A program made the position numbers and the translations under genes. Positions 32,665 through 63,554 of a DNA stretch of 64,000 nucleotides are shown here, in pieces. Within the stretch, counting starts at the first letter, position 1; each line of letters opens with the position of its first letter. Below the pieces are notes generated by a model. That model made no database searches. It was not told where the DNA came from and saw nothing but the letters and a program-made list of their open reading frames with translations. The stretch comes from Heteronotia binoei. Taxonomy: Eukaryota. The DNA is taken from the NCBI RefSeq assembly GCF_032191835.1, contig NC_083237.1:25048001-25112000 (forward strand). Direction: 5' to 3'.

Positions 32665-33490
32665 TGGATAGTAAATAATCTTATTTTAAATATAAATAAG
32701 ACGAAGGAAATTATAGTGGATTACAGGAAGAATAGTTTGGACACCCAGCCGTTGTTTATTGATGGTGTTATGGTAGAACAGGTGACAGAATGGAAGTTTC
32801 TGGGAATTACCATGAAACAGGATCTAACATGGGGGGCAAATACTTTAGCTCTAGAGAAAAAGGCCCAGCAACGACTATACTACTTAAGACTCTTAAGATC
32901 ACTACAACTGTCAGGGAGTCTGCTGGTTGCCTTTTATCGTAGTTCCATTGAGAGCATTTTATCTTATTGCCTCTGCGCGTGGTTTGGGAGCTGCACGGAA
33001 GCAGAGAGAAGGGTGCTCCAAAGAGTGATGAGAAGAGCACAAAAGATTTGTGGATGTTCTCTCCCCTCATTGGTGGATCTGTATAATATGGCATGTAAAA
33101 GGAAGATACAAATGATCCTAAGGGACCATTCACATCTGGGCCATTTGCTTTTTGAGATCTTACCGTCAGGTAGACGATATAGAGTGTTGAAGGCTAGGAC
33201 AAACAGATTTAAGGACAGTTTCTATCCAAGTGCTGTGGTTAGGTTAAATGCAGGGTTATGAAGGATTATCTGTTTTAGATGTATTTAATGGTTTAAATGG
33301 TTTTAATGGTTTTATGAATGTTTATCCGTTTTAGATGTATTTAAATGGTTTTAATGGTTTAAATGGTTTATGAATATGTGTGTTTGATGTGTTGGTATGT
33401 TGTGGAAGAGCACCTCATTTCGTTGCTCTCTTTTTGTTGAGAACAATGACAATAAATTCATCTCATCTCATTCATCTCATCTCATTCTCA
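32665..33490 (+). mobile_element. Rex1/Babar LINE, 5'-truncated; intact ORF end, 3' UTR and (TCTCA)n tail
   Basis: Translation NNLILNINKTKEIIVDYRK...KFLG...DLTW...KKAQQRLYYLRLL...FYRSSIESIL...LPSGRRYR...RTNRFKDSFYPSAV, typical of Rex1/Babar RT C-termini; AATAAA then microsatellite tail at 33452-33490. Confidence 0.85.
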
Positions 33491-38611: not shown

Positions 38612-41600
38612 ATGATCCGAATTCATGTCCTGGAGGAAAAGGCTTTTGTGTGGAATTCCAGTGATGCACAGCGTATCCGAGAAGAACACCGCATTGTTGG
38701 TACACTGGTTGGGGCGCTGGCTCGGAAGCCACAGCAGAATGCGAGGCTGGGCCTTCCCCTCCAGTTGCTCCCAGAAGAGACCCGGCTGTTGGCAGAGAAG
38801 GGGGTGGCGACCTTGCTTAAAAACCTGACTTTACAGCCCCTGGCAGATGATGCAGGCCAGGTAATGGCTGATCTGATCTTCGACAGTCCCCTACAAGGAT
38901 AAACCCCATATCCCTCCTGGTAGATCTGGTGTTGGCTTGGATGAGTGTAAAAGATGGACCATACAGATACCATTGTCTCCGTAGAATGGATCAGTATTTT
39001 GCCATCTTTTCAGACCCAGGAGCCCTCCTACACCTTGAATGACAGGATGGGCTCTACCAGTTAAGTCTTCCCTCCTATTTGCCTGTTTCCTCCCACCCCC
39101 CAATCTCTTTTTAGGGAACCCAGAGGCAAAGAATGGCTAAAGTCCTTGTTTCGTAGAGGTATAAGAAGAGGGAAATCCTACAGTGCAGCAGAGGGTAACA
39201 AAGCTCCATCTACCAAAACATTTTCTTCCACACTGAAGGATGGTTGAAAATAAAGCCACTCACTATTCCTTCCCCTTCTCTTTAAGCCTGTTAGGTTAAA
39301 ACATGATCCAGTGGCAGGTTGATAAACATATGTCCATCACATAGAATCATAAAATTGGAAGGAACCTCCAAGGTCATCTAGTCCAACCCCCTGCCCAATG
39401 CATGGAATTCACAAATTCCACCCTGCCCCCCCGTCAATAGTGACCCCTGTTCAATGCACAGAAGATGGCAAAAAAACTTCCAGGATCTCTGCCCAAACTG
39501 GTCTGGAGAAAAATACCTTCCTTATCCCAAAGTGGCAATTGACATTTCCCTGGGCATGTAAGAAAGGGCCACAGGCACCAAGCCCTGATGCAACCCTTCC
39601 TGTCCTCCCCCACATGATCTGCCTAAATTCTTTTAATCTCCAGCTCTACCATGTTTTTCTTCTGTGCTCTGCCTTACTAATAATAATAATAATATTTTAT
39701 TTTTATATCCCGCCCTCCCCGCCAGGCGGGCTCAGGGCGGCTAACAGACATGGGGTCTGTGTGTGTTCCAACTAGTGCTGGGAAGGCATCTGCTGGCTTT
39801 TTTATACTCAAAGGAAAGGGGCTTTTTCTGTGTCCCAGTTGCCTTTGCTGCAGAGTAGTGGGTTAACTCCACTATGTCCTGAACCCCCCTCTCCCTTATT
39901 TACCTGAATGCCCAGTTTCATGAAGACTTCCGAGGAACTTGAAAACCCAGGATTTTGGCTGGAACTTCAGTTCCCAAGAGCCAATTTAAAAATGCAGGCA
40001 GGCAAGTGAAACACTCTTTATGACTTCCTGCTCTCCATCCATCACGTTCCCAATGCACCGGTATTTGGGGAGCAATGTTCCCTCTAAGCTGTGGAGCAAA
40101 AATTCCACTTTGTGAGCTACTGGCATTAAAGTTGTGAGTGAGCAATTTTGTTACTGCATAATTCAGTTTCCTCTTGAGCCATCCTTCCTGAGGACAAAAA
40201 TGTGTGAGCTGGAGGCTAAAAAACTGAGCAAGCTCACACTAACTCAGTTTAGAGGGAACACTGTTGGGGATCAGGACACTTGTGGCTTGCATGGCTCCCT
40301 GGTCCTCTCCCCAGAGTATACAAATTCTTCTTTATTTTTTTATTCCTAGTTGGGGTGAGGAACTAATCCAGACTTTTCAACAGTTCCAGAAATGGATCTG
40401 GGGAAAAGTCTGAAGTTAGAAATCTGGCCAACCTGACACATTTGCAGTAACCCTGTGGAAATGGATAAAATGCAGTTTGAGGCCCAAACTCTGGGACGCA
40501 GAAGTGGAGAAAGGGTGGCACTGAGCTTGCCTGCCTGCGTTTGCAGGATCCCTTGTTCTTGGAGGCTGTGGCTGCCTACGAAAAGGAGCAAGAGGAGAGC
40601 TATCAGGAGCAACTCAGACTTGCTGGTGAACAAAGGAAGGCCTTGATGGGCACTCTGGCTGAACGCATAGCGGAGGGTCGGGCAAAGAAACGGCAACGGA
40701 GAGGGGAAGAAGCAAGTGAGTGTAGTTCTTCTGCTATATGGGGCCTTTGCATTGGGTAAGGAGATGGGGAGAGTCCGGAAGGATATGAAAACAGCTAGAC
40801 TGGCCTGGATGAATCCTATATCTCCCTTCTCTATCCATGGCAAGGATGCTGGAAACATCCCACATGATACTATAAATATTCCTTAATTCCATTTCTGGCT
40901 TTGAAGGTGTTAGGATTCCATACATTAGCACTGAAGCTGTGAATGCTATAAACAGAAACAAGTTTTCCCACTTTCTGTCATAACCTTTGAATCACCTAAT
41001 GAAATTAAAAGCAGATGGTGAGAAAACTGTCCTTTGCAGAGCAGATAATTTTGTGTTAAGGGGCACTGCCAGAAGACATGGTGGCAGCTACTAGCTTAAA
41101 AGGGGGATTGGATGTTCATGGAGGAAGAGGACTATCAGCTGCTATGGAGCATGATAAGAAAGAGAATGGAACCTCCAGGGCTTTTTTTGTAAGAGAAACT
41201 CCTTTGCATATTAGAGTCATGGAGTAAAAGGACAGGTCCTCTTGTGGATCAAAAACTGGCTGAGTAATAGGAAGCAGAGAGTGAGTATAAATGGGCAGTC
41301 TTCGCAGTGGAGGACGGTAAGCAGTGGGATGCCGCAGGGCTCGGTACTGGGTCCCATGCTCTTTAACTTGTTCATAAATGATTTAGAGTTTGGAGTGAGC
41401 AGTGAAGTGGCCAAGTTTGCGGATGACACTAAATTGTTCAGGGTGGTGAGAACCAGAGAGGATTGTGAGGCACTCCAGAGGGATCTGTTGAGTCTGGGTG
41501 AGTGGGCGTCAGCGTGGCAGATGCGGTTCAATGTGGCCAAGTGCAAAGTAATGCACATTGGGGCTAAGAATCCCAGCTACAAATACAAGTTGATGGGGTG

Positions 41601-44600
41601 TGAACTGGCAGAGACTGACCAAGAGAGAGATCTTGGGGTCGTGGTAGATAACTCACTGAAAATGTCAAGACAGTGTGCGTTTGCAATAAAAAAGGCCAAC
41701 GCCATGCTGGGAATTATTAGGAAGGGAATTGAAAACAAATCAGCCAGTATCATAATGTTCCTGTATAAATCGATGGTGCGGTCTCATTTGGAGTACTGTG
41801 TGCAGTTCTGGTCACCACACCTCAAAAAGGATATTATAGCATTGGAGAAAGTCCAGAAAAGGGCAACTAGAATGATTAAAGGGCTGGAACACTTTCCCTA
41901 TGAAGAAAGGTTTAAATGCTTGGGACTCTTTAGCTTGGAAAAACATCGACTGCGGGGTGACATGATAGAGGTTTGCAAGATAAAGCATGGGATGGAGAAA
42001 GTAGAGAAAGAAGTACTTTTCTCCCTTTCTCACAATACAAGAACTCGTGGGCATTCAATGAAATTGCTGAGCAGACAGGTTAAAACGGATAAAAGGAAGT
42101 ACTTCTTCACCCAAAGGGTGATTAACATTTGGAATTCACTGCCACAGGAGGTGGTGGCAGCCACAAGCATAGCCACCTTCAAGAGGGGTTTAGATAGAAA
42201 TATGGAGCAGAGGTCCATCAGTGGCTATTAGCCACAGTGTGTGTGTGTGTGTATATATATATATAAATTTTTTTTGCCACTTTGTGACACAAGAGTGTTG
42301 GACTGGATGGGCCATTGGCCTGATCTAACATGGCTTCTCTTATGTTCTTATGTTATGTTCTTATTAGGGCTCTCCTGATGTAGCCAGTCCTCCAAGAGCT
42401 TACAGGGCTCTTAACACAGGGCCTACTGTAAGCTCCAGGAGGATTGGCTACATTAGGGATTTGTGGCCTAATATGCTAAGGAGTTCCTGCTACAAAAAAA
42501 GCCCTGGGAACTTCCCTATATTATGGCAGTATACCTCCAACCAGGGCTTTTTTTTTAACTCCTTTGCATATTAGACCCCCCCCCTCCGTTGTAGCCAATC
42601 TTCAAGAGTTTACAGTAGGCCCTTTACTAAGAGCCCTGTAAGCTTCTGGAGGATTGGCTATATCAAGTGTGTGTGGCCTAATATGCAAAGGAGTTCCTGC
42701 TAAAAAAAAAAGCCCTGCCTCCAGCTGACAGATGCCAGAGACAAACAGGCTGTTGGCTTGTGGACTTCCTAGATACATTTGGCTGGCCGCTGCTAGAAAT
42801 GAGATGTGGGAGGCCTTGGATGGATCAAGCAGCACTTCGGAGGTAGCATTATATGCACCAAATGTGCTGCAGAGCATCCTACATCTTGACTCTTATTTTT
42901 GAATTTTTATTTCTAAATTTAGATTTTGGTACTGTCAACAGCCACCATAATTTACAGTGATATTCTCTGCTCACTGGGTGTATGTGTTTCAACCAGAACT
43001 CAGCCTAAACTGAGAATGTAAGAGCAACCATGCTAGATCAAAGAAATCTTCCATTTAATCCAGCAATGGACTAGGCTCAGTTCTGGACTCTTTAGGTTTT
43101 TCCTAAAGAATTAATTAGCTGTCAGTTTTTAACTTGTATACTGTTTTTATGATACTTTTTACATCTGGGTTAGGGCAATTAACAAATCTAATAAATAATA
43201 ATAGTAGTAGCTCAGATAAATCTTTTTTGCCATAATACTGAAAACCAATTATCTGGAAGTTTAAAAACTGTGCATATGGGTCTATTTTGAATTGGTAATG
43301 TAAGCAGCTTCTTATTCGGTATTTATCATCATGTACATACGAAATAAAAAGAAATTAAAAGTTGCTCAGACTAGGCATAAACTTGATTTGTATTTGTTCT
43401 TTCTCCTCTCGCCAGTGGTTTTATTTGCATGGTGTTCTTAATTATTATTTTATGTCTCCTTATAATGAAAGGTTATTTTCAAATGTTGTTCTGGGTCTCT
43501 GACCTGCATCTCCAAGAACTGTTTCTGAGGTTAATGGCTCCTAAAACAATTTATATACAACCATAACATATCGTTTATGTAGAAATGCATCCTGAGCGCA
43601 GGTGATATCTAATGTTCCCTCTAAGCTGGGAACACATGGAGTCGTGTGAGCAAAAATTCTGTTTTGCGAACTACTGGCATTAAAGCTGTGAGCTACTGCA
43701 TAAATTAGTTTGCTCCAGGGCCATATTCCCTGAGCTAAGACAAAAATGTGTGAGCTGGAGGCTCATCTTAGAACAGGGGTGGTCAAACTTGCTTAATGCA
43801 AGAGCCACATAGAATAAGGGAGGGAGGAAAATAGATGGGGGAGGGGGAAATAAAGCAACTTTAACATTAAATGTATTCTCCAACCTGCTGGCTGGCTTGG
43901 AGAAGTGATTTAAAGAGACAAATGCTTTCTTCAAGCAGGCCAATGGGGCAGTGGGGGCTTCGAGAGCTGCACAATATGTGTGAAAGAGCCACTTGTGGCT
44001 CCTGAGCCGCAATTTGGCCATCCTGGCTTAGAGGGAACAGAGGTGATACCTGTAGATACCTTAAATAGCTAGGAGGAATGTTGCTAGAAATGTTTCTCCA
44101 TCCAGTTTTTCCATGCTGGATGCAGGAATATTCACTTTTGCTTTTTTCCCCAGATCCTCTGTCAGAACCTGCAGACCTGGAACCTCGTTTTGTGTTTCCC
44201 CGGGAAGCTATGATGGTCCAACTCCCAACAGAGCGGACCCAACGAGGACAAGAAGAGGAGGTGGACTGGCGTTTGCCCTCCAAAGAGTGGCCATACAGTG
44301 GACAACCAGAGCACGAGATGCGTTACCGTGTTTTCCAGAACCTTTGGGAACGAGGCTACTATATCACCAGTGGGAGCAAATTTGGGGGCGACTTCCTTGT
44401 TTATCCAGGTAGAGAAAATGACTGGGGCTGGCAGGGAGTTGGCGGTACTGTAGTTAAAACGTATTAAAAATCTGGAGTAAGGACATATCTGTAGGAAATT
44501 ATTAAGCTTCCCATCAGTTTTCCTGTCCCACAGTCCCAGCAGCAGACTTTCAATCATGCCTGTCATAGCTATTTGGTGTAGTGGTTAAGTGTGCAGACTC

Positions 44601-50330: not shown

Positions 50331-51109
50331 CGGTCTCTACTCTTAGATGCGCAGTGGGACAGGGGGAAAACTTTTATTTTTAGAGATGGAGTGGGATGAT
50401 TTTTCTGAGCCCTAGGCGCAGGGCCCTAGCTAGAATTTGGAAGGGGGGGGGGGTTACATTTTTCGGGGGGCACTGATGTCCTGCCCAGTGCCCCAAACAA
50501 CCGTCCCTCTAGTGGTTCCCTCCCTGCTTGCCTCTCTCTCTTGCCACTGCACTTCCCTCCCCCCTCCCCAAACCAACTTGCTTCTGGGTTGGGGGCAGAA
50601 GCAGCCCCCAGCGCCCCCCCCCACGTTTAAGGGCCCGTGGATCAGCTGTTTCACGGGCCCTTTAACTTGTGCAGGGGCTGGGGACTGCGGAGGGTTGCAG
50701 CGAGCTCTCCAACACCCTCTCTTCCCCACCAGTGTGGGCCTGCAACAGAAGCAGGGCCTCTGAAACAGCTGATCCACAGGCCCTTTAAGTAGCGGCGGAG
50801 AGGCTGGGGGCTGCTTCTGCTGCCGGGAGCGGCTCCAGGGTGAACAGATCCTAGGCAGGTGACCCCCCCCCCCACGACCCCCCAGCCCCACACTGCTCAC
50901 CCCCACCCGCTGCCACGGTGCTCCGCTTGCGTAGGCGGTTCTAATCGAAAACAAGACTCCGCTGGCTAGGCCAGTACCTACAAGGGGGCCTGTGGGGGCA
51001 CAGCCCCCCTACTTCTGGAAGAGGCCTCTTGACTCTGGGGCCCCAACCAGCCCCTGGGGCCTCTGCCATGGTTCTAGGGCAGTGGAGAGGGGGAAAAGGT
51101 AAAAGTCGG

Positions 51110-54100
51110 ATCTACACGGATCTTCATGAATTCATATGATTTTTACACTGAAATGAAATCAAACCACTTTAATCCTATAGATCCTGTCTTAGACTATAGG
51201 CAGGACCACAAAAATCATGCCTCCACGAATTCGTGGCGCCTCAGCAATGCAAAAACTGGCTTCCAAAGCACGGATCCTCATGAATTCATATGATTTTTAT
51301 GGAGAAATGAAATCAAACCACCATTATGTTGTAGATCCTGTCTTAGACTATAGGCAGCACCAGAAAAATCATGCCTCCACGAATTTGTGGCGCCATAGCA
51401 CTGAAAAAACATGTTTCCAAACCACGGATCCTCATGGATCCTCATGATTTTTGCTTTGGGCCACCCCAAGATAACCAGCCAATCACATATCATGTCCATG
51501 GGCAGATGTTGCACCACAGAAATCGTGGATCCACGTGTTCGTGGCAGCGCCAGGGACCAAAAACTTGCTTTTGGACCACGGATCCTCATGAATCCACATG
51601 ATTTTTGCCTTGGATCCCCCCAAGCCATCCATCCAGTCATATATCATGTCCATGGGCACAGTTTACACCACAGAAATCATGGATCCACGGCTTCGTGGCA
51701 GCGCCGGGGACCAAAAACTTGCTTTTGGACCACGGATCCTCATGGATCCACATGATTTTTGCCTTGGATCCCCCCAAGCCATCCATCCAGTCATATATTA
51801 TGTCCATGGGCACAGCTTACACCACAGAAATCATGGATCCACGGCTTCGTGGCAGCACCAGGGACCAGAACTTACTTTTGGACCACGGATCCTCATGGAT
51901 CCACATGATTTTTGCCTTGGATCCCCCCAAGCCGTCCATCCAGTCATATATCATGTCCATGGGCACAGTTTACACCACAGAAATCATGGATCCACGGCTT
52001 CGTGGCAGCGCCAGGGACCAAAAACTTGCTTTTGGACCACAGATCCTCTTGGATCCACATGATTTTTTACTTGGATCCCCCCAAGCCATCCATCCAGTCA
52101 TATATATGTCCATGGGCACAGTTTACACCACAGAAATCATGGATCCACGGCTTCGTGGCAGCGCCAGGGACCAAAAACTTGCTTTTGGACCACGGATCCT
52201 CATGGATCCACATGATTTTTGCCTTGGATCTCCCCCAAGCCGTCCATCCAGTCATATATTATGTCCATGGGCACAGCTTACACCACAGAAATCATGGATC
52301 CACGGCTTCGTGGCAGCGCCAGGGACCAAAAACTTGCTTTTGGACCACGGATCCTCATGGATCCACATGATTTTTGCCTTGGATCCCCCCAAGCCATCCA
52401 TCCAGTCATATATCATGTCCATGGGCACAGTTTACACCACAGAAATCATGGATCCACGGCTTCGTGGCAGCGCCAGGGACCAAAAACGTGCTTTTGGACC
52501 ACGGATCCTCATGGATCCACATGATTTTTGCCTTGGATCCCCCCAAGCCGTCCATCCAGTCATATATCATGTCCATGGGCACAGCTTACACCACAGAAAT
52601 CATGGATCCACGGCTTCGTGGCAGCGCCAGGGACCAAAAACTTGCTTTTGGACCACGGATCCTCATGGATCCACATGATTTTTGCCTTGGATCCCCCCAA
52701 GCCATCCATCAAGTCATATATCATGTCCATGGGCACAGTTTACACCACAAAAATCATGGATCCACGGCTTCGTGGCAGCGCCAGGGACCAAAAACGTGCT
52801 TTTCGACCACGGATCCTCATGGATCCACATGATTTTTGCCTTGGATCCCCCCAAGCCGTCCATCCAGTCATATATCATGTCCATGGGCACAGTTTACACC
52901 ACAGAAATCATGGATCCACGGCTTCATGGCAGCGCCAGGGACCAAAAACTTGCTTTTGGACCACGGATCCTCATGGATCCACATGATTTTTGCCTTGGAT
53001 CCCCCCAAGCCGTCCATCCAGTCATATATTATGTCCATGGGCACAGCTTACACCACAGAAATCATGGATCCACGGCTTCGTGGCAGCGCCAGGGACCAAA
53101 AACTTGCTTTTGGACCATGGATCCTCATGGATCCACATGATTTTTGCCTTGGATCCCCCCAAGCCATCCATCCAGTCATATATCATGTCCATGGGCACAG
53201 TTTACACCACAGAAATCATGGATCCACGGCTTCGTGGCAGCGCCAGGGACCAAAAACGTGCTTTTGGACCACGGATCCTCATGGATCCACATGATTTTTG
53301 CCTTGGATCCCCCCAAGCCATCCATCCAGTCATATATCATGTCCATGGGCACAGCTTACACCACAGAAATCATGGATCCACGGCTTCGTGGCAGTGCCAG
53401 GGACCAAAAACTTGCTTTTGGACCACGGATCCTCATGGATCCACATGATTTTTGCCTTGGATCCCCCCAAGCCATCCATCAAGTCATATATCATGTCCAT
53501 GGGCACAGTTTACACCACAGAAATCATGGATCCACGGCTTCGTGGCAGCTCCAGAAATCAAAAACTTGGTTATAAACCACGGATCCTCATGGATCCACGT
53601 GATTTCTGCTTCGGACCCCCCAAGCCCTCCACCCAGTCACATATCATGTCCATGGGCAGAGCTCTCACCACAGAAATCATGGATCCACGGCTTCGTGGCA
53701 GCGCTAGGGCCCAAAAACTTGCTTTTGGACCACGGATCCTCATGGATCCACATGATTTCTGCTTTGGATCCCCCAAGCCCTCAAACCAATCACATACCAT
53801 GTCCATGAGCAGAGTCTGCACCACAGAAATCGTGGATCCATGGCTTCGTGGCAGCGCCAGGGACCAAAAACTTGCTTTTGGACCACGGATCCTCATGGAT
53901 CCACGTGATTTTTGCTTCGAATCCCTCCAAGCCCTCCATCCAGTCACATATGATGTCCATGGGCACAGTTTACACCACAGAAATCATGGATCCATGGTTT
54001 CGTGGCTGCGCCAGGGACCAAAAACTTGGTTTTGGACCACGGATCCTCATGGTTCCATGTGATTTCTGCTTCGGATCCCCCCAAACCCTCCATCCAGGCA

Positions 54101-54720
54101 CTTATCATGTCCATAGGCAGTGTTTGCACCACAGAAAATGTGGATCCACAGCTTCGTGGCAGCGCCAGGGACCAAATACTTGCTTTTGGACCACGGATCC
54201 TCATGGATCCACGTGATTTCTGCTTCGGAACCCCCAAGCCCTCCATGCAATCACATATCATGTCCATGGGCAGAGTTTCCACCACAGAAATCATGGATCC
54301 ACAGTTTCGTGGCAGCGCCAGAAATCAAAAACTTGGTTATGAACCACCGATCCTCATGGATCCACTTGATTTTTGCCTTGGATCCCCCCAAGCCCTCCAT
54401 ACAGTCATATATCATGTCCATGGGCAGAGTTTTCACCACAGAATTGGTCGATCCACGGCTTCGTGGCAGCGCCAGGGACCAAAACTTGCTTTTGGACCAT
54501 AGATCCTCATGGATCCACATGATTTTTGCGTTGGATTCCACCATGATTTTTGGCAGACCTTGCACCACAGGAATGACAGGTCCATGGCTTTGTGCCGGTA
54601 CCAAGGAGCCAAAATATGGTTTTGAAGTGCGGATCCTTCTTGATCTTAAAGTTATTTGCGTTGGATCAAGGAAAACTCGACATTATACCACATGTAACAT
54701 CCATGGTCATAGCTTGCTGA
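51110..54720 (+). repeat. Left arm: tandem array of 154-bp units (~22 copies plus degenerate inner copies)
   Basis: Equivalent ORF starts recur every 154 nt (52374, 52528, 52682, 52836, 52990, 53144, 53298, 53452); each unit has up to four GGATCC motifs. Confidence 0.95.
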
Positions 54721-55282
54721 ACAACTATCACACATTCACAATTTTATTGTTCACCACACTCATTATCCATCCAGATGTCACGTCTATGTCCAGCGTTTGC
54801 AAAATACAAATTGGATTTCGAGTACCTTGTATGATGTCACAGTGTGGTTACATACTTTGAAACACTTAATCTTCATGAGTTCTGTGACTTTTCATTTTTG
54901 AATAGTTGGGCTCATCATGCATGGTCCCCCTGAGGTTTCTTTCACATCGCACAGCACGTCCATGACCACAGAATAACCCACGAAAACCTCAGAACACTGC
55001 CAAGATGCCAAACACTGCTTCAGCTACTTTGAGGCTTGTGCATTACGACATCACACCAATGTCTACAGGATGACCAAACAAAAAAAATCTGTAATGTCTC
55101 TACCTTATCAAGGACACCACAGTAACATGAGAAATCATATCATATCCATACCTTTCACTGTAAATAACTGCATTCTGAACTTTCTGATGCCACTGAGTTG
55201 CAAACTATCCAAGGCAGATATTGTAATGGTCTTATCTTTGACTTCAAAACATCTTGCTCACTAGATAGAGGCCACCAAATTA

Positions 55283-55590
55283 GAATAATGGAATCATAGA
55301 GTTGGAAGGGACCTCCAGGGTCATCTAGTCCAACCAACCCCCTGCACAATGCAGGAAACTCACAAACATCTCCCCCTAAACTCACAGGATCTTCATTGCT
55401 GTCAGATGGCCATCTAGCCTCTGTTTAAACACGTCCAAGGAAGGAGAGCCCACCACGTCCCGAGGAGGAAGCCTGTTCAACTGAGAAATTGCTAACGATC
55501 AGGAAATTCTTCCTGATGTTGAGCGGAAACCACTTTTGATCTCAACCGCTTCTGGTCCTACCTTCCAGGGCCACAGGAAACAATTCCACA
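55283..55590 (-). mobile_element. CR1 LINE 3' end (minus strand)
   Basis: AGAATCATAGAGTTGGAAGGGACCTCCAGGGTCATCTAGTCC is the reverse complement of a CR1 terminus. Confidence 0.85.
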
Positions 55591-55639
55591 CAAGGCAAAC
55601 ACAATTTATCACCAAAAACCAAGTGTCCACATCATGTTC

Positions 55640-56192
55640 AGTGATTGTGTCACTTTACTCTGCTGTGGTTAGGACCCTACCAGACTACTGCATTCATTTT
55701 GGGGCACCACAGGTTAATAACGAAATATGTCCAGAGGAGGGCAATGGAGATGATGAGGGACATGGAGACCAAGTCCTATGAGGAAAGATTGAAGGAGCTC
55801 GGTCTGTTTAGCTTGGAGAGGAGACAACTGAGGGGTGATATGATCACCATCTTCAAGTACTTCAAGGGCTGTCATATAGCGGATGGTGTGGAATTGTTTT
55901 CTGTGGCCCCAGAAGGTGGGACCAGAACCAATGGGTTGAAATTAAATGAAAAGAGTTTCCAGCTCAACATGAGGAAGAACTTCCTGACCGTTAGAGCGGT
56001 CCTCAGTGGAACAGGCTTCCTCAGGTGGTGGTGGGCTCTGCTTCCCTGGAGGTTTTTCAACAGAGGCTAGATGGGCATCTGACAGCAATGAAGATCCTGT
56101 GAATGTTGGGGAAGGTGTTTGTGAGTTTCCTGCATTGTGCAGGGAGTTGGACTAGATGACCCTGGAGGTCCCTTCCAACTCTATGATTCTAT
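55640..56192 (+). mobile_element. CR1 LINE 3' end (plus strand), degenerate ORF2
   Basis: YEERLKELGLFSLERRQLRGDMITIFKYFKG...RKNFLTVRAV; tail GATGACCCTGGAGGTCCCTTCCAACTCTATGATTCTAT. Confidence 0.9.
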
Positions 56193-56217
56193 ACAATTCT
56201 ATTATTTTAGTGTAGAA

Positions 56218-56352
56218 CAGGGGTGGCCAACAGTAGCTCTCCAGAAGTTTTTTGCCTACAACTCCCATCAGCCCAGCAAGCATGGCTGATGGCTGGGGCT
56301 GATGGGAGTTGTAGGCAAAAAACTTCTGGAGAGCTATCGTTGGCCACCCCTG
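56218..56352. mobile_element. 135-bp palindromic hAT MITE
   Basis: CAGGGGTGGCCAAC ... GTTGGCCACCCCTG, almost wholly self-complementary, with a perfect 8-bp TSD GTGTAGAA (56210-56217, 56353-56360). Confidence 0.92.
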
Positions 56353-56439
56353 GTGTAGAATGTCAATTTGGGGACACTGCTAAACCAGGAATAAAGGTCT
56401 ACTGTGAAATTGTTTTCCAAGACTCCTATCTTTTCATAA

Positions 56440-59400
56440 GAGGACCCATGAGGATCCGTGCCTCAAAATCATGTTCTGGATCCATGGTGCTGCCACGAAG
56501 CCATGGATCCATTATATCTGTGGAGCAAGCTCTTTCCATGGACACAACATGAGATTGGATGGTGAGCTTGGGATGAGCCAATGCAGATATCATGAGGATC
56601 CATGAGGATATGTGCTTCAAAGCCATGTTTTCGCTCCATGATGTTGCCACAATGCCAAGGATCCATGATTTCCAGGGTGTAAACTCATGAGGATCCATGG
56701 TGCAAAACCAAGTTCTTCTTCCATGGTGCTGCCACGAAACCGTGGATCCATGATTTTTGTGGTGGAAGCTCCGCCCATAGACATGATATGCGATTGGATG
56801 GTGAGGTTGGGGGAATCCAAGGCAAAATTCATGAGGATTCATGAGGATCCGTGCTCCAATACCAAGTTTTTGGTCTCTGGCACTGCCACGAAGCTGTGTA
56901 TCTATGATTTCTGTGGTGCAAGCTTTACCCAAGGACATGATATGTGATTGGATAGTGAGCTTGGGGTGGCTCAAAGTAAAAATCATGAGGATTCATGAGG
57001 ATCTGTGTTCCAAAAGCAAGTTTTTGGTCCCTGGCGCTGCCATGAAGTTGTGAATCCACAATTTCTGTGCTGCAAACTCTGTCCATGGGCATGATATGAG
57101 ACTGGATGGAGGGCTTGGGGGGCTCCAAAGCAAAAATCATGTGGATCCATGAGGATCCGTGGTCCAAAAGCAAGTATTTGGTCCCTGGCGCTGCCACAAA
57201 GCTGTGGATCTATGATTTCTGTGGTGCAAACACTGCCCATGGACATGATAAGTGGCTGGATGGAAGGTTTGGGGGGATCCGAAGCAGAAATCATGTGGAT
57301 CCATAAGGATCCGTGGTCCAAAATCAAGGTTTTGGTCCCTGGCGCTGTCACGAAGACGTGGATCCATGATTTCTGTGGTGCAGACTCTGCTCATGGACAT
57401 GATATGTGATTTGATTGAGGGCTTGGGGGATCCGAAGCAGAAATCATGTGGATCCATGAGGATCTGTGGTTCAAAACCAAGTTTTTGGTCCCTGGCGCTG
57501 TCTTGAAAACGTGGATCCATGATTTCTGTGGTGTAAACTGTGCCCATGGACATGATATGTGGCTCTATGGAGGGCTTGGGGGGATTTGAAGCAAAAATCA
57601 CGTGGATCCATGAGGATCCGTGGTCCAAAATCAAGTTTTGGTCCCTGGCGCTGCCACGAATTCGTGGATCCATGATTTCTGTGGTGCAGACTCTGCTCAT
57701 GGACATATGTGATTTGATTGAGGGCTTGGGGGATCCGAAGCAGAAATCATGTGGATCCACGAGGATCCGTGATTCAAAACCAAATTTTTGGTCCCTGGCG
57801 CTGTCTTGAAAACGTGGATCCATGATTTCTGTGGTGTAAATTGTGCCCATGGACATGATATGTGGCTCTATGGAGGGCTTGGGGGGATTCGAAGCAAAAA
57901 TCACGTGGATCCATGAGGATCCATGGTCCAAAAGCAAGTTTTTGGTCCCTGGCACTGCCACGAAGCCGTAGATCCACGATTTCTGTGGTGGAAACTGTGC
58001 CCATGGACATGCTATGTGACTGGATAGTGGGCTTGGGGGGATCCGAAGCAGAAATCACGTGGATCCATGAGGATCCGTGGTCCAAAAGCAGGTTTTTGGT
58101 CCTTGGCGCTGCCACGAAGCCGTGGACCAATGATTTCTGTGGTGCAGACTCTGCTCATGGACATGGTATGTGATTGGATGTAGGGCTTGGGAGGATCCGA
58201 AGCAGAAATCATGTGGATCCATGAGGATCCGTGGTTCAAAACCAAGTTTTTGATTTCTGGCGCTGCCACCAAACTGTGGATCCATGATTTCTGTGGTGTA
58301 AACTGTGCCCATAGACATGATATGTGGCTGTATGGAGGGCTTGGGGGGATCTGGAGCAAAAATCACGTAGATCCATGAGAATCCGTGGTCCAAAAGCAAG
58401 TTTTTTGTCCCTGGCACTGCCACGAAGTCGTGGATCCACGATTTCTGTGGTTCAACATCTGCCCATGGACATGATATGTGGCCGTATGGAGGGCTTGGGG
58501 GGTTCCGAAGCAGGAATCACGTGGATCCATGAGGATCCGTGGTTTATAACCAAGTTTTTGATTTCTGGTGCTGCCACGAAACCGTGGATCCATGATTTCT
58601 GTGGTGGAAACTCTGCCCATGGACATGATATGTGATTGGATGTAGGGCTTGGGTGGAACCGTAGCAAAAATCACATGGATCCATGAGGATCCGCGGTTGA
58701 TAACCAATTTTTGATTTCTGGCACTGCCATGAAACCGTGGATCCATGATTTCTGTGGTGGAAACTCTGCCCATGGACATACTATGTGACTGGATGTAGGA
58801 CTTGGGGAGATCCGAAGCTAAAATGATGTGGATCCATGAGATTCCGTGGTCCAAAAGCAAGTTTTTGGTCCCTGGCGCTGCCACAAAGCCGTGGATCCAC
58901 GATTTCTGTGGTGGAAACTCTGCCCATGGACATGATATGTGACTGTATGGAGGGCTTGGGGGATCCAAGGCAAAAATCATGTGGATCCATGAGGATCCGT
59001 GGTTCAAAATCAGGTTTTTGGTCCCTGGATCTGCCACGAAGCCGTGGATCCACGATTTCTGTGGTGCAAATTCTGCCCATGGACATGATATGTGACTGGA
59101 TGTAGGACTTGGGGAGATCCGAAGCTAAAATGATGTGGATCCGTGAGCATCCGTGGTCCAAAAGCAAGTTTCTGGTCCCTTGCGCTGCCACGAAGCTGTG
59201 GATCCACGATTTCTGTGGTGGAAACTCTGCCCATGGACATGATATGTGACTGTATGGAGAGCTTGGGGGATCCAAGGCAAAAATCACGTGGATCCATGAG
59301 GATCCGTGGTTCAAAATCAAGTTTTTGGTCCCTGGATCTGCCACGAAGCTGTGGATCCACGATTTCTGTGGTGCAAACTCTGCCCATGGACATGATATGT

Positions 59401-61925
59401 GATTGAATGTAGGGCTTGGGGGGATCCGAAGCAGAAATCATGTGGATCCATGAGGATCCGTGGTCCAAAAGCAAGTTTTTGGTCCCTGATGCTGCCACGA
59501 AGCTGTGGATCCACAATTTCTGTGGTGGAAATTCTTCCCATGGACATGATATGTGACTGGATGGAAGGCTTGGGGGGATCCACAGCAAAAATCACATGGA
59601 TCCATGAGGATCCGTGATCCAAAAACAAGTTTTTAGTCCCTGGCGCTGCCACGAAGCCGTGGAGCCACGATTTCTGTGGTTCAACATCTGCCCATAGACA
59701 TGATATGTGATTAGCTGGTTATCTTATGGTGGCCCAAAGTAAAAATCACATGGATCCATGAGGATCCATGGTCCAAAAGCAAGTTTTTGGTCCCTGGCGC
59801 TGCCACGAAGCCGTGGATCCATGATTTCTGTGGTGCAGACTCTGCCCATGGACATGATATGTGATTGGATTGATGGCTTGAGGGGATCCGAAGCAAAAAT
59901 CACATGGATTCATGAGGATCCATGATCCAAAAGCAAGTTTTTGGTCCCTGGAGCTGCCACGAAGCCATGAATCCACGATTTCTGTGGTGCAAACTCTGCC
60001 CATGGACATAATATATCACTGGATGGTGGGCTTGGGGGAATCCAAAGCAGAAATCATGTGGATCCATGAGGATCCGTGGTCCAAAAGCAAGTTTTTGGTC
60101 CCTGGCGCTGCCACGAAGCCATGAATCCACGATTTCTGTGGTGCAAACTCTGCCCATGGACATGATATGTGACTGGATGGAGGGCTTGGGGGGATCCAAA
60201 GCAAAAAATCATGTGGATCCATGGGGATCCGTGGTCCAAAAGCAAGTTTTTGGTCCCTGGTGCTGCCACGAAGCTGTGGATCCATGATTTCTGTGGTGCA
60301 GACTCTGCCCATGGACATGATATGTGATTGAATTGAAGGCTTGGGGGGATCCGAAGCAAAAATCACATGGATCCATGAGGATCCGTAGTCCAAAATCAAG
60401 TTTTTGGTCCCTGGCGCTGCCACGAAGCCGTGGATCCACGATTTCTGTGGTACAGACTCTGGCCATAGACATGATATGTGACGGTACGGAGGGCTTGGGG
60501 GGATCCGAAGCAGAAATCAGGTGGATCCATGAGGATCCGTGGTCCAAAATCAAGTTTTTGGTCACTGGCGCTGCCACGAAGCCGTGGATCCATGATTTCT
60601 GTGGTGCAGACTCTGCCCATGGACATGATATGTGATTGAATTGAAGGCTTGGGGGGATCTGAAGCAGAAATCACGTGGATCCATGAGGATCCGTGGTCCA
60701 AAACCAAGTTTTTGGTCCCTGGCGCTGCCATGAAGCCGTGGATCCATGATTTCTGTGGTGTAAACTGTGCCCATGGACATGATAAGTGACTGGATGGAGG
60801 GCTTGGGGCGATTCGAAGCAAAAATCACGTGGATCCATGAGGATCCATGGTCCAGAAGCAAATTTTTGGTCCCTGGCACTACCACGAAGTTGTGGATCCA
60901 TGTTTTCTGTGGTGGAAACTGTGCCCATGGACATGCTATGTGACTGGATAGCAGGCTTAGGGGGATCCAAAGCAAAAATCATGTGGATCCATGAGGATCC
61001 GTGGACCAAAAGCAAGTTTTTGGTCCTTGGCGCTGCCACAAAGCTGTGGATCCATGATTTCTGTGGTGCAGACTCTGCCCATGGACATGGTATGTGATTG
61101 GATTGAGGGCTTGGGGGGATCCGAAGCAAAAATCACATGGATCTATGAGGATCCGTGGTCCAAAACCAAGTTTTTGGTCCCCGGCGCTGCCACGAAGCCG
61201 TGGATCCACGATTTCTGTGGTACAGACTCTTCTCATGGACATGATATGTGATTGGATGTAGGGCTTGGGGGGGATCCAAAGCAGAAATCATGTGGATTCA
61301 TGAGGATCCGTGGTTCAAAACCAAGTTTTTGATCCCTGGCGCTGCCACGAAACGGTGGATCCATGATTTCTGTGGTGTAAACTGTGCCCATGGACATGAT
61401 ATGTGACTGGATGGAGGGCTTGGGGGGATCCGAAGCAAAAATCACATGGATCCATGAGGATCCGTGGTCCAAAAGTAAGTTTTTGGTCCCTGGTGCTGCC
61501 ACGAAGCCGTGGATCCATGATTTCTGTGGTCCAACATCTGCCCATGGACATGATATGTGATTGGCTGGTTATCTTGTGGTGGCCCAAAGCAAAAATCATG
61601 AGGATCCATGGTTTGGAAACATGTTTTTTCAGTGCTGTGGCGCCACCAATTCGTGGAGGCATGATTTTTCTGGTGCTGCCTATAGTCTAAGAGAGGATCT
61701 ACAACATGATGGTGGTTTGATTTCATTTCACCATAAAAATCATATGAATTCATGAGGATCCGTGCTTTGGAAGCCAGTTTTTACACTGCTGAGGCGCCAC
61801 GAATTCGTGGAGGCATGATTTTTGTGGTCCTGCCTATAGTCTAAGACAGAATCTACAGGATTAAAGTGGTTTGATTTCATTTCAATGTAAAAATCATATG
61901 AATTCATGAAGATCCGTGTAGATCC
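56440..61925 (-). repeat. Right arm: inverted tandem array of the same 154-bp unit (~35 copies)
   Basis: Reverse complement of the left-arm unit (ATCATGTGGATCCATGAGGATCCGTGGTCCAAAAGCAAG...); more heterogeneous, most degenerate at 56440-56900. Confidence 0.95.
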
Positions 61926-63554
61926 GACTTTTACCCAGACCCGTGGAGAGGTCACTTCTGAGGTGCCAGGGGCATAAGCAGTCCCAGCCTCTGGCCTGAG
62001 TTAAAGAGCCTGCCGATCAGCTGTTTTGTGAGCCCTTTAACTTGAGTGGGCTGGGGTCCCCTTCTGCTGCCGGCCCTGCACGCTGTTTTAGTGGCAGGGA
62101 AGGGAGGGCTGTGGTGAGCTCATCGCTGCCCTCTTTCCCACCAGTGAAACAACGCATGGGCCGGCAGCAGAAGCAGCCCCCAGCCCCCTGCAAGTTAAGG
62201 GACCACGAAACAGCTGATCTGTGGGCCCTTTAACTGGTGCAGGGGCTGGGGGCTGCTTCTGATGCCGGCCCATGCGTTATTTCACTGGTGGGGAAGAGAG
62301 GGTGGTGTGAGCTCGCCACAGCCCTCCCTCCCCAGTCACTAAAACAGCGTGCAGGCGGACAGCACTTGTGGTGAGCAGGGGGAGCGCCATGCCAGCAGCA
62401 GGTGAGCAGAGTGAGGCAGCGGGGGTGGCGGGTGGCAGCAAGGGGCGAGCGGAGCACCGTGGCAGCGGCTGGGGTTATTGCCTGCCTAAGGCCCGTTCAC
62501 CCTGGAGCCGCTCCTGGCAGCAGAAGCAGCCCCCAGCCTCCCCTTCTACTTAAAGGGCCCATGGATCAGCTGTTTCAGGGGCCCTTAACTTGCATGGGGC
62601 CTGCTTCTGCTGCCGGCCCACGCGTTATTTTACTGGTAGGGAAAAGAGGGCAGTGGCGAACTCACCGCAGCCCTCCCTTCCCTGCCACTAAAACAGCAGG
62701 TGAGGTGGCAGCAGAAGCAGTCCCCAGCCCCTGCACAAGTTAAAAGGCCCGCGAAGCAGCTGCTCCAGGGGCCCTTTAACGCCCGGAAGCAAATTGGTTA
62801 GGGGAAGGGGAAGGGGAGGGGAGGGCGGTGGCAAGAGAGGCAGGCAGGGAGGGAGCAACTAGAGGGAAGATCGAAAACTGTAAATCCCCCCCCCCCCCAC
62901 CTTCCAAATCCTGGCGATGGACCTGCTTTACACCATCACCGCCATCTTGGAAAAGGGCATTCCCCCCTCAGAAGTCTTGAGAGAGACAGCCCTCTTGGAA
63001 ATGTATCGATTTATGTCGTAGAAAAGCCATTTTAAGTATGGGCAAGCGTAGCATGAACATTTTGGAAAAGGGCAAGTAAGGCTCTGCTTCCAACTTGTAT
63101 TAGGGCGGTATTATAAGATGCCATTTCTGAAAAGGGCAGAGGCTTTATCACCTTGGTGATGGTGCATTCTCCGCAACCCTATTGATTCCATCACGCATTT
63201 GGTTTAAAGTGCTGAGAAATGTTCGCTGCGTCTTTCCGCCACTTGAGGCTCTTCTCTTCTTCCACGGCTGACCTCATTCCTCTCCGCTAAATAGTTACCC
63301 TAATTGCATTCAGAAGCCGCCACTTCCTCACGCTAGCCTCATACTAATTAATTAACTCGCTGGGTAAAACCTATGAAAATTATCTAATTAAAGTTGTAAT
63401 TTAGACTTCTGAGATTACCAAATGTTGCAGAAAAGAAACCAATCTCCTCCTGACATAACATTCAAATAATCTATGTGCCAGTGTCTATTTTGTTGGTGCT
63501 TTTATTTAAAACGGGGAACATTTCTCCAAAGAGCTGAGGATGGCGTTTGTGGGT

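Follow-up and report, generated by a model that had tools for sequence, protein, structure and literature searches.

A probable non-autonomous foldback-type DNA transposon built from a 154-bp tandem repeat in the genome of the gecko Heteronotia binoei

Introduction

Foldback transposons whose terminal inverted repeats (TIRs) are made of tandem repeats are a known kind of mobile element, familiar from flies and nematodes. Among the published families compared, the one structurally nearest to the locus described here is Tm1, a Mutator/Foldback element of root-knot nematodes, in which unlike 7-bp outer motifs lie inside duplications of the target site (TSDs) 9 bp long, next to a short shared motif (PMC3169594). 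Its TIRs consist of tandem repeats and are unequal and variable in length, derivatives resembling MITEs (miniature transposable elements with inverted repeats) accompany it, and its transposase is that of a Phantom-type Mutator-like element (MULE) (PMC3169594). The present analysis concerns a stretch of 64,000 nucleotides of Heteronotia binoei (NCBI RefSeq assembly GCF_032191835.1, contig NC_083237.1, forward-strand positions 25,048,001 to 25,112,000), referred to as the window, with coordinates counted from its first letter. Within it, the segment at 51091–61942 resembles a satellite and very probably represents a single inserted copy of a foldback-type DNA transposon (class II, cut-and-paste) that is non-autonomous, hereafter the gecko element.

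The comparison with Tm1 is one of structure and not of sequence similarity. The repeats of Tm1 measure 13–15 bp and its elements about 1–2.6 kb, whereas the gecko element has a 154-bp unit and reaches 10.9 kb; one host is a nematode and the other a reptile, and for Tm1 the transposase (Phantom-type MULE) is known. In Tetris of Drosophila virilis, 8–10-bp TSDs enclose a terminal domain, a tandem array with a repeat of about 220 bp, an inner domain and a non-coding middle (PMC4079207). Many Tetris copies are rearranged and few are complete, the autonomous partner is unknown, and the repeats can seed satellite arrays (PMC4079207). The gecko element shares this modular TIR plan, with a 154-bp in place of an approximately 220-bp repeat, but the hosts differ, the sequences are unrelated as far as can be told, and the gecko core repeat is no major satellite (about 1,500 units at a likeness of at least 90%).

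More generally, MULEs have TIRs longer than 100 bp, 8–10-bp TSDs and subterminal repeats (PMC5225508). Muta1 of Aedes, a 'type 2 foldback' MULE with an experimentally demonstrated transposase and activity, has TIRs of 145 bp, subterminal repeats of 12 bp, 8–9-bp TSDs and hundreds of non-autonomous derivatives (PMC5225508). The terminal motif contains unpaired positions in both, at nucleotides 5–6 in Muta1 and at positions 4–7 in the gecko element. Elements of the Drosophila FB and Muta1 type also share with it long, internally repetitive TIRs and derivatives with truncated or variable repeat number. Passages in two reports on Galileo, a foldback-like member of the P superfamily, describe internal tandem repeats in its long TIRs, with extra transposase binding sites (PMC3688188, PMC3573991). 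Long TIRs with internal tandem repeats are thus common to Galileo and the gecko element. Galileo differs in having TSDs of 7 bp and in encoding a transposase of the THAP/P type.

Among vertebrates, Xmix/Xstir and miDNA4 of Xenopus are cases of tandem repeats spread by non-autonomous DNA transposons (PMC9659126). These MITEs measure about 400 bp (miDNA4 being Tc1/mariner), with the repeat lying inside the MITE or arising from its tandemisation, and they lack the kilobase TIRs built of repeats that mark the gecko element. A vertebrate survey records MuDR as patchy, in human only among the genomes covered (PMC4350176). No report of a foldback transposon in reptiles was found in a search confined to the literature.

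Results

Architecture and ends of the element

From one TSD copy to the other, the locus is composed as follows.

51082–51090, plus strand: left TSD copy GTGGAGAGG, one of two occurrences in the window, abutting the element
51091–51114, plus strand: left terminal domain, the 7-mer GGGAAAA (51091–51097) followed by the shared 17-mer GGTAAAAGTCGGATCTA; marked by a depth step and by loose read ends at 51094 and 51098
51115–51576, plus strand: left outer repeats A1 (51115–51268), A2 (51269–51422) and a transitional unit (51423–51576), with counterparts in the right arm
51577–54543, plus strand: left core 154-bp array of about 19 units, from Tandem Repeats Finder (TRF) and unit comparison
54544–56446, no strand: non-coding middle of unique sequence and nested repeats, bordered on either side by decayed units
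56447–61466, minus strand: right core 154-bp array of about 33 units, from TRF and unit comparison
61467–61918, minus strand: right outer repeats, namely the transitional unit with a 10-bp deletion (61467–61610), A2 (61611–61764) and A1 (61765–61918)
61919–61942, minus strand: right terminal domain, reading on the minus strand GGGTCTG and then GGTAAAAGTCGGATCTA
61943–61951, plus strand: right TSD copy GTGGAGAGG

The 154-bp arrays delimited by TRF occupy 51115–54543 and, reversed, 56447–61918, and the GC skew flips between them from about −0.2 to about +0.2. Split at a conserved anchor, the left arm (about 3.5 kb) comprises 22 units and the right arm (about 5.5 kb) 36, nearly all of 153–155 bp, on either side of a middle of about 1.9 kb. 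Both ends have the form GGG-N4-GGTAAAAGTCGGATCTA, in which GGG is common, positions 4–7 differ and the sequence matches thereafter; read from the outside in, the left end is GGGAAAAGGTAAAAGTCGG... and the right end, as reverse complement, GGGTCTGGGTAAAAGTCGG.... The 25-mer GGTAAAAGTCGGATCTACACGGATC is present twice in the 64-kb window, once per end and on opposite strands (51098, plus; 61935, minus), with 0 occurrences expected from shuffles. Across the outer 480 alignment columns of the two arms, 449 match, one 10-bp indel included; BLAST of arm against arm returns 96.9% identity over 325 nt, and the outer 600 bp or so are about 95% identical. Deeper in, arm-to-arm identity is about 88%, the general level between units.

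Immediately outside both ends, in direct orientation, lies GTGGAGAGG, at 51082–51090 and 61943–61951 and nowhere else in the window. Because the bases beside it differ on both sides, the duplication is exactly 9 bp without sliding, and the span of the element, 10,852 bp, is likewise exact. A symmetric direct repeat of at least 9 nt within 12 nt of the inverted-repeat boundary arose in 5 of 30,000 composition-preserving shuffles of the flanks, which puts the chance of so long a symmetric flank match at about 2e-4. In the middle (54544–56446), no open reading frame (ORF) of at least 50 amino acids has a Pfam match to a transposase, and the only elements found there are a fragment of a long interspersed nuclear element (LINE) and a MITE. 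An earlier note on this stretch, made from its letters, had described two opposed 154-bp arrays of about 3.5 and 5.5 kb, near-identical inverted outer segments of about 480 bp, a GGG-N4 motif at both ends and a direct 9-mer outside each of them; each of these features is borne out by the measurements above.

Long inverted repeats and satellites assemble poorly, and short reads are unable to bridge the arms. A rival reading is an assembly artefact, in which two separate arrays would have been joined chimerically or as a foldback. The arms, however, differ in length (3.5 versus 5.5 kb), in unit composition and in about 5–13% of their sequence, which is not the picture of a mirrored read. What joins them is a middle of unique sequence, 1.9 kb long, that contains nested insertions, among them a MITE bearing its own TSD. 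A single real insertion would be expected to leave the same 9 bp duplicated in two unlike, unique flanks, as is the case here. Such an artefact is therefore most improbable.

Ends of the family in reads and contigs

Other copies were sought over 50500–52300 in public raw whole-genome shotgun reads labelled as the same species (X2, X3), in contigs from RNA libraries of a second species (X13) and in EcoRI-bounded DNA contigs of a third (X1). The reads amount to 1.9 Gb, or about 1x for an assumed genome of about 2 Gb. Within 3–7 nt of the left end of the gecko element, depth climbs from at most about 10 to about 470. In X2 it stays at about 0–20 over most of the left flank and reaches 450–570 from 51110 inward, where X3 reaches 220–280. 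The genome, if it is about 2 Gb, holds a few hundred ends of this family.

Reads from other copies depart from the locus at two points. At 51094, 134 reads (X2) and 56 (X3) do so; at 51098, the counts are 139 and 47, and these reads carry the terminal 7-mer GGGTCTG, that of the element's other end. The near-equal numbers of GGGAAAA and GGGTCTG, which would be expected if every element had one of either kind, make both of them features of the family. Among GGGTCTG-class ends, the 30 outward letters agree at 0.52–0.55; for unrelated flanks about 0.51 is expected (7 fixed letters plus 23 at a background of 0.36, taken from the boundary of an unrelated repeat at 50968), which means that the flanks of most of these ends differ from one another. 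In a 238-nt contig of organism A, another species, the match begins at 51090, at GGG, and the flank is unrelated.

Further inward, 74 reads (agreement 0.87) show many copies leaving the locus at 51535 for an 'inner' sequence that is conserved. A typical member thus seems to comprise about one core unit in addition to A1, A2 and the terminal domain, the 10.9-kb copy being an expanded giant. Six 'opposite strands' (strand-switch) joints lie within A units, with 3–9 reads each at roughly 1x. A single-copy joint is calculated to give about 0.7 reads, and the 8–9 reads at the best joints indicate short foldback deletion derivatives of about 10 copies each. Core units are covered at about 60–560x at the same roughly 1x coverage; depth summed over six of them gives a rough 1,500 copies genome-wide at a likeness of at least 90%. 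Elsewhere in the window, outside the two arrays, there are no copies of the 154-bp repeat. Bounded by inverted terminal domains and a TSD, the arrays do not form a classical or major satellite.

An exact search of JGI metagenome contigs with the 25-nt terminus gave 0 matches. Contigs of three metatranscriptomic RNA libraries (two with the same species label, one from another species) contain 22–24% of the 31-mers sampled from 51091–53000, and besides transcription, carried-over DNA is a possible source of these matches.

Transposition weighed against other origins

The 9-bp duplication, the position of the ends at the boundary of a multi-copy family, the paired end types, the diverse flanks and the deletion derivatives together make up a cut-and-paste signature. 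The earlier note had taken the apparent satellite to be a mobilised non-autonomous DNA transposon, and the depth jump, the equal end types, the near-random flanks of the GGGTCTG ends, the derivatives and the end found in another species all speak for this.

Several observations weigh in the opposite direction. About half of the left-type ends elsewhere (those clipped at 51094) run outward into a conserved sequence that this copy and the rest of the window lack, ...TGTGAGAATTTTGTGAGCTTTAAGATTGGA, with outward agreement of 0.73 and 0.59, and a plurality of the GGGTCTG ends share ...ACTCTAAAAAATGGGTCTG, which is found in an X13 contig as well. The TSD is seen in one copy only (n=1), from which an 8-bp TSD with one additional chance base could also be read; the other copies are represented by unpaired read ends. 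Copy numbers depend on the assumed genome size and the roughly 1x coverage, and the 10.9-kb inverted repeat is taken as assembled.

The conserved outward context of the left-type ends reads ...TGTGAGAATTTTGTGAGCTTTAAGATTGGAAAAGGG, and ...TGTGAGAATTTTGTGAGCTTTAAGATTGGA is present in organism A too. When the read-derived neighbours (the outward extensions, the inner sequence beyond 51535 and the flanks from other species) were searched for in the window, only chance matches of 9–13 nt appeared. This context may mark a longer subfamily or a rearranged copy amplified together with its flank, or else the usual left end lies farther out. It lowers confidence somewhat, and the TSD is not explained away by it.

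These extensions of many other copies past the left end, and the single TSD observed, would also suit an origin without transposition, in which a local 154-bp satellite underwent inverted duplication (by palindrome formation or as adjacent arrays) and the GTGGAGAGG pair is coincidental or a by-product of repair. The flanks form a GC-rich, partly palindromic and rearrangement-prone repeat cluster, and a second palindrome, the LINE tail, lies inside the middle. Palindrome formation would, however, invert the flanks too and leave no direct 9-mer at both ends, and a chance 9-mer pair has the low frequency given by the shuffles (about 2e-4). The ends also fall within 3–7 nt of the point at which a family of several hundred copies stops, in which both 7-mers are equally represented and the flanks are diverse, and the core unit, at about 1,500 units, is no major satellite. 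An origin of this kind is accordingly rated as improbable, and insertion of a foldback-type transposon is the preferred reading.

Repeat units and evolution of the arms

In the outer part of the arms, units pair by position, with identities of 97% for L01/R01, 97% for L02/R02 and 89% for L03/R03. A1 and A2 are only 86% alike, each being 97% identical to its counterpart in the other arm; the third, transitional unit is common to both arms (89%), its right copy carrying a 10-bp deletion, and units no longer pair by position from the fourth one inward. The arm interiors are homogenised within each arm, positional counterparts being confined to the outer three units. Left units L04–L15 are 98–99% identical to one another, a uniformity that is probably a sign of recent local amplification. 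The right core array is more heterogeneous than the left, with a mean pairwise identity of about 86%, and shows 2-unit duplications (R27/R29, 97%). At five positions that differ between the arms (51148, 51303, 51325, 51340 and 51396), the majority of reads agrees with the right arm, from which it follows that the arms derive from one family consensus and that the left arm has acquired private changes.

Alignment of the units brings out two blocks conserved between A and core units, at columns 1–30 (CACGGATCYTCATGRATYCAYATGATTTTT) and about 89–125, which are natural candidates for protein-binding sites. For the 24-nt terminal domain and the read-derived outward extensions, a derivation from decayed 154-bp units is not supported, their alignment scores lying within the shuffle range.

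The unit contains 1 stop trinucleotide when its outside-in strand is read and 4 when the opposite strand is read. Owing to this single stop, the arrays contain ORFs of 130–357 amino acids, at 51598–54860 (plus) and 56426–61129 (minus), which a gene finder could call. As genes they are rejected: they have no Pfam match and no homologue, and the translated terminal ORF and a three-unit ORF have no match among 5.8 billion proteins.

Nested insertions in the middle

Two nested features are located in the middle.

55288–56195: CR1-like LINE 3' fragment (55640–56195, plus strand) with a partial inverted copy (55288–55591, minus strand)
56210–56360: nested hAT-like MITE of 135 bp at 56218–56352, with ends CAGGGGTGGCCAAC... 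and ...GTTGGCCACCCCTG and an 8-bp TSD, GTGTAGAA

An ORF at 55645–56070 within the LINE fragment shares 42% identity (E 1e-18) with the C-terminus of the reverse transcriptase ORF at 41242–42231. The LINE tail forms a palindrome with arms of about 300 nt and 89–98% identity, in which four inverted pairs share one centre near 55740; inversion by twin priming is excluded as its cause, since the same segment is duplicated. As DNA, the hAT-like MITE forms an almost perfect hairpin (−74.7 kcal/mol, z −16).

Among the ten longest ORFs of the window outside the arrays, the sole match to a mobile element is the LINE reverse transcriptase. That ORF (41242–42231) matches RVT_1 at E 1e-16, and another at 32716–33261 matches ALKBH8_N at E 3e-13, each being a LINE remnant elsewhere in the window. 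Between 50000 and 63500, no Rfam family was found.

Flanks of the element

Both flanks (50581–50830 and 61955–62800) consist of copies of a GC-rich repeat of about 190–290 bp, which is itself palindromic: 61973–62261 and 62550–62780 match their own reverse complement at 75–77%. Its read depth of about 8–20x suggests a low-copy family. Paralogues of this repeat were tried as stand-ins for the empty site and rejected as uninformative either way, because in 5 of 5 the homology starts at least 2 nt to the right of the TSD and none crosses the insertion point; in the two nearest it starts 2–6 nt to the right. Within the left flank, a piece of about 40 bp (50968–51008) has a depth of 55–98x with sharp loose ends on both sides. 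Its other copies continue into TGACTGCTAGGCAGGGCCCCCTGACTTGGG, and it is a fragment of another dispersed repeat.

Discussion

The structure of the gecko element corresponds to that of foldback transposons, with long, variable, tandem-repetitive TIRs, a shared terminal domain and a non-coding middle. It also shows what characterises MULEs, namely a TSD in the 8–10-bp range (n=1) and TIRs above 100 bp with subterminal repeats (PMC5225508, PMC3169594). Comparison with described superfamilies suggests that Mutator/Foldback (Phantom-like) is most likely the best fit and Merlin the second; the former is preferred because the 9-bp TSD is joined by unlike 7-bp end motifs, as in Tm1, and by tandem-repeat TIRs.

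Merlin elements have TIRs of 24–462 bp, a conserved terminal GG and 8–9-bp TSDs (PMC8101967). The GGG start and the 9-bp TSD of the gecko element agree with these features, which do not discriminate between Merlin and MULEs. Some Merlin members carry internal tandem repeats, for instance of a 163-bp unit (PMC8101967), and the genomes of frog, zebrafish and human include Merlin (PMC4350176). The gecko element could on these grounds be a non-autonomous Merlin mobilised by a transposase of the IS1595/Merlin-type DDE class, which autonomous members encode (DDE_Tnp_IS1595), its structure and cut-and-paste movement being unchanged by the assignment. Multi-kilobase tandem-repeat TIRs and unlike end motifs are, however, not described for Merlin in PMC8101967, whereas Tm1 and foldback MULEs have them, and no Merlin transposase was seen among the window ORFs scanned. 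Membership of Merlin is thus unlikely.

Under the preferred Mutator/Foldback reading, a transposase encoded elsewhere, which in the Phantom case would combine FLYWCH and MULE domains, would act in trans, binding motifs that recur in the terminal domain and in each of the units. It would cut at the GGG ends, and the element would insert into a 9-bp staggered break, the implied site before insertion being ...CTAGGGCA GTGGAGAGG TCACTTCTG.... Thereafter each arm's array would have expanded on its own, through slippage or unequal exchange, reaching 22 units on the left and 36 on the right, with a recent burst of amplification in the left arm, and the LINE and hAT-like MITE insertions would have accumulated later in the middle.

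Only a few per cent separate the ends of the element from the majority of the family, which comprises hundreds of ends and short MITE-like derivatives. On a tentative but quite possible interpretation, this family is undescribed, relatively young and of the Foldback/Mutator kind (Phantom-type), its host being a squamate reptile. If true, this would be, as far as found, the first foldback family of an amniote with kilobase TIRs of satellite-sized repeats. For annotation, the arrays are to be masked as transposon, their long open frames being spurious. The GGG-N4-GGTAAAAGTCGGATC ends would provide a handle for tracing the autonomous transposase and for dating activity. The family would account for 'satellite-like' arrays in gene-rich, GC-rich regions, and with several hundred ends and palindromes of 10 kb it would bring structural instability, and difficulty of assembly, to a lizard genome. 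In Drosophila and nematodes, foldback elements are classic sources of new satellite DNA as well as of inversions and deletions; the gecko family, if the interpretation is true, would offer a vertebrate model of how transposon-borne repeats seed satellites and large palindromes.

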